The position numbers and the translations under genes are program-made. Positions 19,403-24,444 of a DNA stretch of 64,000 nucleotides are shown here, piece after piece. The notes beneath the pieces are model-generated. The model saw only the letters and a program-made list of their open reading frames with translations, was not told the origin of the DNA and did not search any database. Location: sequence record NC_061446.1; one strand, given 5' to 3'. The number at the start of each line of letters is the position of its first letter. Positions within the stretch are counted from its first letter, which is position 1.

Positions 19403-19605
19403 ACAGACGAATGATCGCTTTGCTTGCGCTGGTGATCTTCTGCTTGGTGGGAGCAGTTGCTTCCGCCGAAGCAGCAAACCACTACAACATTATGTTGTGC
19501 CTTGGCCTGACACTTATGTTTCTGGCAGGCTTCTTTATCTGTGTAGAATGTTTCCGTAAGACTTCATGGGAACAACAAAACAAAAAGGACAAAAAGAATG
19601 GCTAA
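19399..19605 (+). CDS. Small membrane protein with two hydrophobic helices (68 aa)
   Basis: MIALLALVIFCLVGAVASA and IMLCLGLTLMFLAGFFICV, basic tail. Confidence 0.7.
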   Translation: MNRRMIALLALVIFCLVGAVASAEAANHYNIMLCLGLTLMFLAGFFICVECFRKTSWEQQNKKDKKNG

Positions 19606-20131
19606 ATCACTCGGCGTTTACCTGACGTATATTCTGCGTCATAAGCCGCAGGACATTGGTATCGCTATGGACACGCAAGGCTGGGTGTCTGTCTCTGACC
19701 TGTTAGAGAAAGCGAAGTATGTTAAGCCGGTCACTCTCGATATGCTAATCGCAGAAGTAGACGCAGACGAGAAGGGTCGCTTTGAGTTCAATCGTGACCG
19801 GACAAAGATTCGCTGTGTTCAGGGGCACTCGGTCGAGCATGTTATCATCAACATGGAAGAATGGACTGAGCTGGCTCCGCTGTACCATGGCACGGCAGAA
19901 AAGAACGTGTCGTCAATCATGCACGAAGGTATTCTGAAACGCAAACGCAAGCACGTCCATATCAGCAACGACATTGAGACGGCACAACGTGTTGGTCAAC
20001 GTCATGGTGAGCCTGTTGTGTTTGAGATTGACGCTCAGGCCATGATCACTCACGGCTACAAGTTCTACCGCGCAGAAAACGGTGTCATCCTAACTGACCA
20101 CGTACCGTCCCGCTATATCAAGTTGGTGTAG
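19598..20131 (+). CDS. kptA: RNA 2'-phosphotransferase (Tpt1/KptA family)
   Basis: YILRHKP, GWV, KIRCVQGHS, LYHGT, RKHVHIS, ENGVILTDHVP motifs. Confidence 0.93.
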   Translation: MAKSLGVYLTYILRHKPQDIGIAMDTQGWVSVSDLLEKAKYVKPVTLDMLIAEVDADEKGRFEFNRDRTKIRCVQGHSVEHVIINMEEWTELAPLYHGTAEKNVSSIMHEGILKRKRKHVHISNDIETAQRVGQRHGEPVVFEIDAQAMITHGYKFYRAENGVILTDHVPSRYIKLV

Positions 20132-20602: not shown

Positions 20603-20938
20603 ATGAAAAAGTCAAAAGTTAAAGCAGAAGCTGTGGCACCTACCATTGAAGGCCGCCCATTCACTTTGTACAACACCTCGCCTATTCCTGATGAATCGAC
20701 AACACCATTCGCTGATCGTGATACATTTCTTCCTATGCTGCGTAAAGTTCAGGACGCTGCTCAACTGGAACGCATTCGTGGTTTATCCTGCTGTCCGTAT
20801 TGCCGTGAGACAATGATGCTTGGTGAATACACCAAAGACAACTGGCTCTGGTCATACTGCTATCAGCACATGATTGAACACCACAACGTAACGCCGTCCG
20901 CAGAATTTATTGCTTACGTCGAAGCTGCTTCCAAGTAA
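20603..20938 (+). CDS. Hypothetical protein with possible Cys/His metal site (111 aa)
   Basis: RGLSCCPYC...W...HMIEHHNV; GAGGA RBS. Confidence 0.7.
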   Translation: MKKSKVKAEAVAPTIEGRPFTLYNTSPIPDESTTPFADRDTFLPMLRKVQDAAQLERIRGLSCCPYCRETMMLGEYTKDNWLWSYCYQHMIEHHNVTPSAEFIAYVEAASK

Positions 20939-20964
20939 CCTGAAATTTAGCTGAGGATATGTAC

Positions 20965-22371
20965 ATGAAAAAGATTAAACACACCTTCCGCCTGACTGAC
21001 TTGGTTCGTATTACCGATGAACTTCCTTCGACCAAGAGCGCTTTCACTTCTGGTGAAGATGCAATTGTTGTTGGTCGTGATGAAACAGAAGATAAGTATA
21101 AACTTCACATCAAGCATGAAGGCGAATGTGCTTGGTATCACGCCGAGCACCTGACGCTTATCAAACACAACCAGAGCGAATTGCTCGACAAGTGGGAAGC
21201 TGGTAAGTATGGCAAGAAGAAAAAGAAAGAGCGCAAGATTCCTGACGAACTGCGCAACTTCACTGCTATTCTGCCTGTGACCTGTAACGCTGATTGCTCT
21301 TTCTGTCCTGAGAAAGAGATGGAGAATAAGGCTGATCAGAAAGCATGGTTAAACAATCTGATTGCGGCAATCAAGGCACACGGCCATCGCGTTGATCACG
21401 TATCAATCTCTGGTGGTGAGCCTACACTTCGCATGAAGTACCTGTTCGAAACGGTCGACCGCATTCGTAAAGAGACAGGTATGCGTAAAGTGGGTCTGAC
21501 GTCTAACGGTCAGTTCCTTGAGAAGCACAACCAGACGATGACGTTCCTTGATCTTAACACGGACGAGATGCTGGAAAGCAAACTGTCGCATTTGAATATC
21601 AGTATGCACTCGTTTGATCGTGAGAAAGCAAACAAGATCATGGGCGTCAAGTATACGTGGACGATTGAAGACCTCGTTCGCTTCCGTCGTCAGTTAGGCC
21701 GCAAGCTGAGTTTTCACATCAACTTCGTTATCAACAAAGAGAACATCGACAACATCGAGTGGGAGTTCCATCAGGCAAACGAACTGATGAAAGCAAACCC
21801 GTGGATTGATGTTGTGTTTCGTGTAGATTACGACAACAAGAAGCTGAGTAAAGAATTGCGCAAGTACGGTATGGCCCACGAAGAATACCGTAATGCCACG
21901 CGTGGATCAATCGGGGAGGCTAAAGAAGCAGAGAAGAAGTTGAAGAAGAAACCAAAGCTGGTGGAGTTGTTTGACTCCATATTCGACGGCAGTTTCTACG
22001 ATGACCTGACCGAAGAAACTATGCCTGGCTTTGACGACACGTTCACTACTGGCTGCCCGTCATGCTTCACGCACCGTAGCACCGACCTCAATAATAGCTT
22101 CGCTTACCTGAAAGCATCTTCATATGAACCGAATGAAGATGAAGAAGAATATACCGAGATGGTGTTTCATATGGACGGCAACCTTTACTTCGACTGGTCA
22201 CGCAAAGAGCCTGTGCCAGAAGTGAAAGTGAAGAAAGCCAAACCCGTCAAAGTGAAGAAAGCGAAGAAAGCGGAGCCACAAGGCTATCCAGATAGCTGTA
22301 ACTTCGGTTCTTCTCGTTGTGGATTTACTGGCGGTAACGGACGTTGTGGTTTCGGTAGTGGTATGTGCTGA
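20965..22371 (+). CDS. Radical SAM protein with N-terminal SH3-like domain and Cys/Gly-rich C-terminal tail (~468 aa)
   Basis: CNADCSFC (CxxxCxxC), SISGGEPT, LTSNG, LNISMHS; tail SCNFGSSRCGFTGGNGRCGFGSGMC; start at 20959 or 20965. Confidence 0.9.
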   Translation: MKKIKHTFRLTDLVRITDELPSTKSAFTSGEDAIVVGRDETEDKYKLHIKHEGECAWYHAEHLTLIKHNQSELLDKWEAGKYGKKKKKERKIPDELRNFTAILPVTCNADCSFCPEKEMENKADQKAWLNNLIAAIKAHGHRVDHVSISGGEPTLRMKYLFETVDRIRKETGMRKVGLTSNGQFLEKHNQTMTFLDLNTDEMLESKLSHLNISMHSFDREKANKIMGVKYTWTIEDLVRFRRQLGRKLSFHINFVINKENIDNIEWEFHQANELMKANPWIDVVFRVDYDNKKLSKELRKYGMAHEEYRNATRGSIGEAKEAEKKLKKKPKLVELFDSIFDGSFYDDLTEETMPGFDDTFTTGCPSCFTHRSTDLNNSFAYLKASSYEPNEDEEEYTEMVFHMDGNLYFDWSRKEPVPEVKVKKAKPVKVKKAKKAEPQGYPDSCNFGSSRCGFTGGNGRCGFGSGMC

Positions 22372-22384
22372 TAAGGAAAACTAA

Positions 22385-23816: not shown

Positions 23817-24080
23817 ATGGCCGTAGGCTTTGTGAAAGATGATGGCGTAAACGATACCATCGAAACAAACGTAATGAACGAGATTGACCGCGCTCGTTCT
23901 GAACTTCAAGGCGTAGGTTCTGATTACTGCGTCAACCCTGACTGCGGTGAAAAGATTCCTGTGATGCGCAAGCTCGCTATGCCGAATGCGCGTTACTGCA
24001 TTAACTGTCAGGCAAGTCATGATGGTTCTGCCCATGCAGGCTATAATCGTCGCGGCTCCAAAGATTCTCAACTGAGGTAG
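23817..24080 (+). CDS. ybiI: DksA/TraR C4 zinc-finger protein, YbiI-like (87 aa)
   Basis: MAVGFVKDDGVN...IDRARSEL...CVNPDCGEKIP...CINCQ...YNRRGSKDSQLR; C-terminus matches E. coli YbiI as recalled. Confidence 0.9.
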   Translation: MAVGFVKDDGVNDTIETNVMNEIDRARSELQGVGSDYCVNPDCGEKIPVMRKLAMPNARYCINCQASHDGSAHAGYNRRGSKDSQLR

Positions 24081-24082
24081 TT

Positions 24083-24307
24083 ATGGATATTAAAGCTAAC
24101 CCGGAAGTGACATACACGCTCGAAGCATTCCTTCCTGCTTCGGGCAACTGGTCGTCTATTAAGTCTGGCATTAAAGAAGAGATTGAGATCTCTGAACTGT
24201 TAGGCCAGTTGAAGATTGATCCGAAGTGCCCACGCAGTCCCGCCACTGCGTTTCGTATGGTGAAAGTGACGCGTGACGTCGTTCAATTCATGGGGATAGA
24301 CAAATGA
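24083..24307 (+). CDS. Hypothetical protein (74 aa)
   Basis: GAGG RBS. Confidence 0.7.
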   Translation: MDIKANPEVTYTLEAFLPASGNWSSIKSGIKEEIEISELLGQLKIDPKCPRSPATAFRMVKVTRDVVQFMGIDK

Positions 24308-24444
24308 GCGATGAATGCAAAGAACCGTACTCGCGCTGCTCTGATTGCCGTACACCTCTAGCAGAAGATGAAGTGTATGGCGAATGGGATGACCTGTGTG
24401 AAAATTGCTCCGCTGATCGTGAAGACGAAGGCGAATCAACCTAA
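24304..24444 (+). CDS. Small CxxC...CxxC zinc-finger peptide (46 aa, absent from the ORF track)
   Basis: MSDECKEPYSRCSDCRTPLAEDEVYGEWDDLCENCSADREDEGEST; ATGA overlap with the upstream gene. Confidence 0.6.
   Translation: MSDECKEPYSRCSDCRTPLAEDEVYGEWDDLCENCSADREDEGEST

Follow-up and report, generated by a model that had tools for sequence, protein, structure and literature searches.

A phage radical SAM enzyme with a terminal cysteine tail that may be its own tethered peptide substrate

The gene analyzed here occupies positions 20965..22371 (+ strand) of a 64,000-nucleotide stretch of sequence record NC_061446.1 (hereafter, the window). The window derives from Erwinia phage pEa_SNUABM_30 (source record MZ443778.1; Alexandravirus), a 259.8-kb jumbo myovirus of Erwinia amylovora, and its positions 1-64000 correspond to the final 64 kb of the GenBank record (195772-259771). 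The gene, annotated as 'hypothetical protein' (coding sequence (CDS) pEaSNUABM30_00270), encodes a radical S-adenosylmethionine (SAM) protein of 468 amino acids (aa) with a tethered cysteine tail. We tentatively favor the interpretation that the tail is the enzyme's own peptide substrate, either tethered to the enzyme or encoded next door, and that its cysteines would dock at an incomplete CxxC site of the enzyme and undergo radical cross-linking. This interpretation is preferred because it alone joins the repeated units of the tail, the conservation of the Cys context and of the C-terminus, the long tether, and the layout in which the enzyme is accompanied by a small gene. An earlier note, made from the DNA sequence, had raised the possibility of an in-cis substrate resembling peptides made on ribosomes and modified after translation (RiPPs). 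This part of the note gains from the persistence of the motif while sequence, copy number and spacing drift, from the signs of purifying selection, from the disordered tether and from the existence of a form with an adjacent gene; the case is built on sequences and a structural model.

The tail DSCNFGSSRCGFTGGNGRCGFGSGMC (residues 443-468; 22291..22368, +), the proposed tethered substrate, follows a Lys-rich disordered linker (residues 416-442; 22210..22290, +); both proved to be exactly as quoted in the earlier note, with a stop codon next to the tail. The same note counted four cysteines in C-x-F repeats. This description fits three of them, which belong to [S/R]-C-x-F units at C445, C452 and C461, and not the fourth, C468, which is the C-terminal residue itself. 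The linker and the tail are disordered in the AlphaFold2 model, where the predicted local distance difference test score (pLDDT) for the two parts together ranges from 35 to 56, drops from 73 to 45 along the linker, and stays below 50 in the tail.

Conservation of the tail in homologues, which the earlier note left to be checked, is borne out. All 15 fetched orthologues (Alexandravirus, Sasquatchvirus Y3, Rivsvirus SNUABM_5 and Yersinia phage fHe-Yen9-02) possess a Lys/Arg-rich stretch followed by terminal C-x-F/Y units, and absence of the tail from a close orthologue was not seen. The orthologous tails are barely alignable. Among the 61 database relatives, down to about 35% identity, about 50 retain at least two C-x-[FYW] units at the extreme C-terminus; in orthologues and relatives alike, the number of units (2-5), their spacing and the sequence of the tail vary. 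In 40 related tails, F, Y or W occupies the +2 position of 110 of the 121 cysteines, whereas composition-preserving shuffles averaged 8.5-12.5 such cysteines and never exceeded 26; these 40 tails come from related sequences, though the tails themselves have strongly diverged. The position preceding the Cys is S, R or G, the +1 position is G, S, N or R, and 30 of the 40 proteins end exactly in C-x-aromatic-COOH.

Comparison of coding sequences indicates that the tail is under purifying selection at the peptide level. Across five phages, 12 of the last 18 tail codons show synonymous variation only, four show conservative replacements and two are invariant, and the Cys codons alternate between TGT and TGC in close phages. 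The two R-C-G-F units of the window protein are encoded by different synonymous codons which, together with the synonymous drift in relatives, rules out a recent DNA duplication or a low-complexity artifact as the origin of the tail. In three longer Alexandra-type orthologues (L010 1501-3096, L014 1501-3078 and L015 1501-2991), a second, internal C-x-F/Y pair and a second Lys-rich stretch come before the terminal pair, that is, the entire linker-plus-units module is duplicated. No other open reading frame (ORF) in the window carries a comparable Cys tail. A tail of the glycyl-radical type was considered, by visual comparison of the R-C-G-F/Y units with the glycyl-radical signature, and rejected: Gly follows only 44 of the 121 tail cysteines, and the Pfam scan detected no glycyl-radical domain. 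The models of the glycyl-radical activases NrdG and PflA also score far under their cutoffs.

The protein belongs to a large family. When 1.84 billion representative proteins were searched with a profile built from 48 of its members, 2618 matched at E<1e-3 and 344 at E<1e-10 (clusters at 50% identity). About 14 close clusters are followed by a broad second tier of proteins that likewise possess Cys tails, mostly of the G-C-G type; membership in this tier was defined by a regular-expression signature together with profile scores. The family set (n=185) consists of retrieved phage-metagenome proteins with the full signature CX3CX2C ... CxxC ... EP ... DW. At least two cysteines are located within the last 25 residues in 164 of these 185 proteins, 151 of which have their last Cys at a distance of 0-2 residues from the C-terminus. 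The tails contain 2-10 cysteines at a spacing of 3-12. The extension past the folded domain has a minimum of 30, a median of 66 and a maximum of 219 residues; the linkers consist of 19% K+R and have a median length of 50 aa, and the Cys part consists of 43% Gly+Ser and 18.5% Cys. Most proteins of the wider family end in Cys or Cys-Gly rather than in an aromatic residue. The Cys-x-Phe tail of the window protein is, judging from these sequences, a clade-specific version of a general terminal Cys-Gly tail. The variable number and spacing of the cysteines, combined with their constant local context, argue for a repeat-type substrate and not for a fixed ligand set.

A short basic-aromatic-acidic linker motif of the [KR][KR]-F-D-F-[DE] type was observed in 13 of 149 family proteins (P0011, P0012, P0014-P0016, P0018-P0020, P0026-P0028, P0032 and P0034). 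Neither the enzyme bodies nor the window protein contain this motif, which could serve for docking.

About one tenth of the family ends directly after the DW motif. Partner genes were sought at the nine tail-less loci with DNA. At five of these (L022, L024, L026, L094 and L102), a co-directional small gene within 1.2 kb encodes a product of 57-82 aa that combines a basic or coiled-coil segment with a Cys/Gly/Ser-rich C-terminus; in four of the five, it is the immediate next gene. At L016, the locus of the sole tail-less member of the close family, the next gene encodes a 101-aa protein with two cysteines in its last eight residues, and at L021, the Cys motif is found at the N-terminus of the upstream gene's product. 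Thus, a partner gene is present at five of the nine tail-less loci under a strict criterion, and at seven under a looser one. The strict criterion also selects 9 of the 1123 other ORF segments in the family loci (binomial P=3.5e-4 for five of nine). Of 38 distinct family loci in IMG/VR, 36 are of the fused type and the remaining two of the split type. The combination of a tail-less enzyme and an adjacent small gene is, as far as gene order and sequence go, the classic maturase-plus-precursor layout. Because fused and adjacent-gene forms both occur, the linker-plus-Cys module appears to be a separable unit that is kept genetically tied to the radical SAM enzyme.

We also considered a rule by which tail-less proteins would have regained a third Cys. 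It came from P0059, the sole first-tier tail-less protein, which has an extra Cys in the K-x-S-x-x-E-P segment, as if the tail cysteines otherwise stood in for the third ligand of MoaA. The rule was discarded given that second-tier proteins such as P0069 and P0084 have both a Cys in this segment and a tail, and that P0059 has a partner gene.

The enzyme body consists of a radical SAM core and a family-specific C-terminal domain. The core (residues about 96-345; 21250..21999, +; Pfam PF04055) is a partial TIM barrel, with pLDDT >95 in the model, which was built with 149 sequences and has a mean pLDDT of 87. The CxxxCxxC motif reported in the earlier note is the CX3CX2C motif C107/C111/C114 (21283..21306, +), the ligands of the SAM-binding 4Fe-4S cluster; it is found in 148 of the 149 aligned sequences, and the Pfam Radical_SAM model matches residues 105-265 (E 6.8e-15; 56 bits vs a cutoff of 29.5). 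The SAM-binding GGE motif (G150-G151-E152; 21412..21420, +) is invariant or near-invariant in the same alignment. Outside the SAM motifs, N211, S213, H215, C364, C367, E398 and D410 are invariant, and R286, K383, E388, P389 and W411 are near-invariant.

The C-terminal domain (residues about 346-415; 22000..22209, +), which ends in D410-W411, has no match in Pfam, PDB or Foldseek. It contains the second Cys motif of the earlier note, GCPSC. The corresponding C364-P-S-C367 (22054..22065, +), at the tip of a predicted beta hairpin (E360-364/E367-371), is indeed present, and is invariant in all 149 sequences. In 108 of the 149 sequences, this pair provides the only cysteines of the domain. In P0061, a real MoaA, the auxiliary CxxC aligns with that of the family, whereas the third Cys, 13 residues further on, lacks a counterpart; the matching segment reads K-A-S-S, and S385 is conserved in 118 of the 149 sequences. 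Because the domain has just two cysteines and the third Cys of MoaA has no counterpart, the C364/C367 hairpin is, as modeled, half of a metal or cluster site, that is, an incomplete one.

The assignment of the enzyme to the SPASM/twitch group, as framed in the earlier note, did not hold up. Pfam detected neither a SPASM domain nor a PqqD-like RiPP recognition element (RRE) in the window protein, and no RRE in the ten neighboring gene products either; the twitch model NF033640 scored 19 bits vs a cutoff of 170, and the only cysteines of the C-terminal domain are those of the CxxC pair. In the Foldseek search, viperin and viperin-like proteins ranked first (E 1e-9, about 200 core residues, template modeling score about 0.5), followed by GDGT-MAS, SuiB, BlsE, EpeE/YydG, NifB and CteB. 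The best matches in the profile search of PDB were viperin, YydG and MoaA. Among the NCBIfam models, MoaA, HxsC and viperin were matched by all 48 members tested, at 1e-15 to 1e-17, across the core only and far below the cutoffs.

Under the substrate interpretation, the protein would be a two-part machine, in which a radical SAM enzyme is joined to a flexible module, the basic linker with its terminal Cys motif, on at least 30 disordered residues. Action on the tail in cis is conceivable, and action by a neighboring copy of the enzyme is more likely. By analogy with the rest of the superfamily and given the motifs seen, the C107/C111/C114 cluster would cleave SAM reductively. A tail Cys would then dock at the metal or cluster site of C364-x-x-C367, as proposed for substrate Cys at an open auxiliary-cluster iron of thioether-forming maturases, and the 5'-deoxyadenosyl radical would take a hydrogen from a nearby residue of the Cys unit. 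Candidate donors are the +1 or +2 position, that is, the aromatic residue in the clade of the window protein, or the C-terminal residue beside the free carboxylate. Quenching of the radical by the bound thiolate would produce an intramolecular thioether-type cross-link, and the cycle would be repeated for each C-x-F/Y unit. Oxidative decarboxylation of the C-terminal residue, as catalyzed by the mycofactocin maturase, would be an alternative chemistry.

In this scheme, the thiolate of the substrate would complete the CxxC site during catalysis, so that the substrate and ligand ideas merge. The other suggestion of the earlier note, that the tail provides ligands for an auxiliary Fe-S cluster, may therefore describe part of the same mechanism, because in thioether-forming enzymes substrate Cys has been proposed to sit at an open cluster site.

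Several observations weigh against a substrate role. This role is deduced from sequence, distribution and predicted structure. The enzyme lacks both SPASM/twitch and RRE; to our knowledge, nearly all characterized peptide-modifying radical SAM maturases have a SPASM/twitch domain and an RRE. The core fold is closest to viperin and MoaA, enzymes that act on nucleotides, and AlphaFold leaves the tail undocked. Two of the nine tail-less loci, both on short contigs, have no partner gene, and no conserved gene for a protease or an exporter/transporter was found near the family gene at any locus examined; the product may remain attached. The basic linker of 30-200 residues is unlike a typical RiPP leader. 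Furthermore, the minimum of two near-terminal cysteines would fit a ligand or redox role equally well.

The ligand role can be extended to a permanent one, in which at least two terminal cysteines and the CxxC pair together make up either a Cys4 metal site or another Fe-S cluster, the actual substrate is a separate small molecule or nucleotide, in the manner of MoaA and viperin, and the small proteins of the split systems are cluster-bridging subunits. We consider this explanation improbable, even though much of the enzyme body suits it: the two conserved cysteines of the C-terminal domain at a hairpin tip form a typical half metal site, to which the family minimum of two tail cysteines would add up to four ligands; the CxxC aligns with the auxiliary CxxC of the MoaA P0061, the third Cys of which the family lacks; and the nearest relatives of the core, viperin and MoaA, act on nucleotides. 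Also, cluster-binding loops commonly contain a Cys with Gly as the next residue. The tail itself fits poorly. A ligand set would be expected to be fixed, whereas the number of cysteines (2-10) and their spacing (3-12) are not, and the ligands would be borne on a disordered basic linker of 30-219 residues, with the tail undocked in the AlphaFold model. The module can be a separate protein, with the motif once at the N-terminus of the partner, and consists of repeated equivalent units which, in the Alexandra-type proteins, are duplicated together with the linker. The conserved +2 aromatic residue, the conserved residue preceding the Cys, and the proximity to the free C-terminus are left unexplained.

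Quite unlikely, in our estimate, is a redox shuttle, in which the tail is a flexible dithiol that delivers reducing equivalents or a hydrogen atom, for example, by re-reducing the CxxC pair after turnover on another substrate, and is itself re-reduced by host thioredoxin or glutaredoxin. The model for such a shuttle is the C-terminal cysteine pair of the large subunits of class I ribonucleotide reductases, and several radical SAM reactions require an extra electron or a hydrogen atom donor cysteine. Consistent with this possibility, at least two cysteines lie near the end of a flexible extension, with the last one 0-2 residues from the end in 151 of 164 proteins, the CxxC pair of the enzyme is invariant, and the epimerase YydG/EpeE is among the nearest structures. 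However, redox CxxC pairs are usually located at the N-terminus of a helix, whereas this one is predicted at a beta-hairpin tip, a position more suggestive of a metal site. A shuttle would need neither up to ten cysteines, nor odd numbers of them, nor a conserved aromatic residue, and a gene for a disordered stand-alone dithiol peptide would be an unusual redox partner. The TSCPD-domain protein encoded next to the family gene at L023, examined as a candidate redox partner, was ruled out as it has no Cys. Taken together, the ligand and redox explanations account less well than a substrate for the variation in Cys number, the conserved aromatic residue, the duplication of modules and the existence of stand-alone partners. 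Even less probable is a targeting or packaging tail unrelated to catalysis, which would bind nucleic acid or the virion interior through the Lys stretch, with the cysteines forming disulfides or binding metal and the enzyme acting on a substrate elsewhere, such as RNA or DNA. The basic linkers (19% K+R) would agree with such a role, as would the RNA-repair-type neighbors (Tpt1 in the window, Thg1 and phosphatases at L024) and the location of one member within a T4-type head-assembly module and of another beside a tail sheath gene; yet gene neighborhoods vary from phage to phage, and targeting leaves unexplained why the module stays with this enzyme family whether fused or split, and why so exact a Cys motif marks the free C-terminus.

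If the tail is a substrate, as we favor, phages would be a rich and unexplored source of peptide chemistry by radical SAM enzymes (344 clusters at 50% identity, E <1e-10), which current RiPP-mining tools keyed to SPASM or RRE would miss, and the design in which an enzyme is fused to its substrate would have arisen independently in a second enzyme superfamily. The protein would be a compact, single-gene system for studying a radical enzyme with a tethered peptide, and a modified protein or peptide would be implicated in infection, with conservation from jumbo phages of plant pathogens to metagenomic T4-like phages. Should the tail be a ligand or redox element instead, the family would still be unusual, with half of a metal site, or a reductant, outsourced to a disordered tail or to a protein of 60-100 aa.

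A bolder and more doubtful extension of the substrate interpretation is that these proteins make up a phage-wide, unrecognized class of self-modifying radical SAM proteins, with a minimal CxxC in place of SPASM and a cross-linked C-terminus, in which the tail is the functional product. They would then be the first radical SAM counterpart of the borosin principle of an enzyme fused to its core peptide. The basic, knotted tail could, for example, serve in infection as an effector that binds nucleic acid or metal. It might conceivably even mirror, on the viral side, the bacterial HXS defense, the effector of which is matured by HxsC and likewise has basic tripeptide repeats.

The ORF at 20965-22371 (+) has an unbroken translation of 468 codons, in agreement with the earlier note, followed by a double stop, TGA TAA (22369..22374, +). 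A Shine-Dalgarno-like GAGGA (20953..20957, +) is located 7 nt 5' of the ATG at 20965, and on this basis, position 20965 was chosen as the start over the in-frame ATG at 20959; the GenBank CDS and the same N-terminal beginning in all orthologues also support this choice. The first 80 residues (20965..21204, +) form a small beta domain that, in the AlphaFold model of the full-length protein, contains five strands, within residues 13-67, and one helix, with pLDDT of about 70-92. This model is compatible with a small beta barrel and with the SH3-like N-domain named in the earlier note. Sequence and profile searches of Pfam and PDB found no match to the domain, and a stand-alone single-sequence AlphaFold model (pLDDT 56) was too poor for a fold search. 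The domain is limited to the clade of Alexandravirus, Sasquatchvirus and fHe-Yen9-02, and is missing from Rivsvirus, which has a 386-aa form, and from most of the family. In BFVD, two small uncharacterized viral proteins, A0A873WCX2 of Klebsiella phage Miami (186 aa) and UPI001E715067 (141 aa), align to it over 79-96 residues with 31-33% identity. The domain is probably common to these proteins and the window protein, in which case it would count as a mobile module of jumbo phages. A short poly-Lys connector (residues 81-95; 21205..21249, +), marked by a pLDDT dip at 75-72, leads to the radical SAM core.

Almost all genes of the window are on the + strand, and ARAGORN detected no tRNA genes in it. 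The radical SAM gene is part of a long series of small orphan genes that all run in its direction, and no enrichment of promoters or terminators was seen. A Tpt1/KptA RNA 2'-phosphotransferase is encoded at 19598-20131 (+; PF01885 E 3e-45, PHROG 5470 E 5e-68), and in Alexandravirus, Y3 and fHe-Yen9-02, the Tpt1/KptA gene keeps its place upstream, at a distance of two or three genes from the one for the radical SAM protein. The tail-less relative at L024 is flanked by two phosphatases and a Thg1-like gene; together with Tpt1/KptA, these surroundings suggest a loose RNA-repair neighborhood. Downstream, a DksA/TraR-type C4 zinc-finger protein is encoded at 23817-24080 (+; PF01258 E 4e-9, PHROG 54), and a gene of this type also adjoins the radical SAM gene in Rivsvirus SNUABM_5 (L013). 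The highly acidic 46-aa ORF at 24304-24444 (+; CDS pEaSNUABM30_00276), with two CxxC pairs, resembles a minimal zinc ribbon. The 111-aa ORF immediately upstream of the radical SAM gene (20603-20938, +) has a Cys/His-rich C-terminal half (CC-x-x-C ... C ... H ... HH). No conserved gene partner was found in the window: this gene and the 201-aa gene immediately downstream occur in some relatives only. The syntenic 50 kb of phB78 encompasses genes for a UvsX-like recombinase, an EPS depolymerase, endonucleases, a dUTPase and a transglycosylase. The absence of Que, Dpd and NrdD neighbors, as stated in the earlier note, holds both for the scanned neighbors and for the annotation of this syntenic region.

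Distant family members are found in phage contexts as well, including sheath and baseplate genes, SLT, and a T4-type head module. The latter is represented by the contig of P0199 (JGI 3300072015), where a tail-less member lies within a T4-type head-assembly module in the order portal, prohead protease, 74-aa gene, radical SAM, 74-aa gene, ..., scaffold, major capsid protein; tail-less L021 lies directly upstream of a tail sheath gene. A search of 185,579 species-representative cellular genomes, with patterns specific to the close family, produced 80 candidate loci, none of which carries the family signature, and tblastn against plasmids gave weak matches to the MoaA core only. Among cultured phages, the family is confined to jumbo phages of Erwinia, Dickeya and Yersinia, with essentially no cultured relatives of the second tier elsewhere. 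We found no published description of the family in the literature, and none of the curated models covers it. GenBank labels its orthologues 'hypothetical', 'radical SAM superfamily' or 'MoaA'. One of the latter, Y3_274 of Erwinia phage Y3 (L008 1501-2844), is annotated as 'GTP 3',8-cyclase MoaA', probably a misannotation, because the MoaA scores are 52-55 bits vs cutoffs of 231-325, and the third auxiliary Cys and the C-terminal domain are missing.

The likeness of the core to viperin, MoaA and HxsC is, on these scores, generic only. MoaA is among the nearest folds and profiles, and its auxiliary CxxC aligns with that of the family, whereas the C-terminal domain that the family lacks is Mob_synth_C (PF06463). 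Viperin scores 50.6 bits vs a cutoff of 180, the PADLOC pVip model is matched at positions 9-152 of 257, and the substrate-binding C-terminal half of viperin remains unmatched in the family. HxsC is the best NCBIfam match of the window core (E 1.4e-16), at only 60 bits vs a cutoff of 268 and across model positions 33-184 of 292. HxsC has been described as viperin-like, lacking SPASM, with a second, C-terminal CxxC (C342/C345), and matures a protein, HxsA, with tripeptide repeats rich in basic residues in the antiphage HXS system (PMC13128918). The invariant C364/C367 could be the counterpart of C342/C345, a comparison that relies on the published description of HxsC. By contrast, the family gene has no HxsA, HxsB or HxsD neighbors, its repeats are C-x-F/Y or C-G rather than H-x-S, and it is encoded by phages, whereas HXS is a bacterial defense locus.

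The mycofactocin maturase MftC is a SPASM enzyme that acts on the C-terminal tyrosine of MftA and requires an RRE partner. Its chemistry is directed at a C-terminal aromatic residue, and 30 of the 40 tails in the clade of the window protein end in an aromatic residue two positions after Cys; in contrast, most tails of the wider family end in Cys or Cys-Gly, and the MftC model is weakly matched by one of the 48 members. The redox tail of ribonucleotide reductases shares with the family a Cys pair within the last residues of a flexible C-terminal extension, disordered in the model; the sole candidates for the re-reduced active-site pair would be C364/C367, at the predicted hairpin tip.

In the thioether-forming maturases of Cys-rich peptides and proteins (sactipeptide and ranthipeptide synthases such as CteB and PapB, and also CrpC), the radical SAM enzyme has an adjacently encoded substrate whose C-terminal part is rich in Cys and made of repeats, as proposed for the phage family; CteB and SuiB are among the Foldseek matches of the window enzyme. 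In particular, CrpC cross-links the Cys-rich product of the neighboring gene, CrpA, in which the acceptor follows the Cys, and the substrate Cys has been proposed to bind to an open iron of the auxiliary cluster (PMC13692751). In the reaction of PapB, Cys is joined to the carbon beside a carboxylate, that of the C-terminus included (PMC12373016). Unlike these maturases, the phage family lacks SPASM, twitch and RRE, has a CxxC pair instead of the 7-Cys motif, and is phage-restricted, and in most members a long basic linker joins the enzyme to its putative substrate. In this last respect, a parallel is offered by the borosins (OphMA-type, and split SonM/SonA), for which fused and split forms are known (PMC8429565): the C-terminal core peptide is fused in frame, split homologues exist, and iterative action would be expected. 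The parallel extends to architecture only, as borosin enzymes are SAM-dependent N-methyltransferases with a different fold and chemistry. Fusion to the putative substrate, lack of SPASM and RRE, and restriction to phages set this family apart from the known systems of radical SAM enzymes and Cys peptides.

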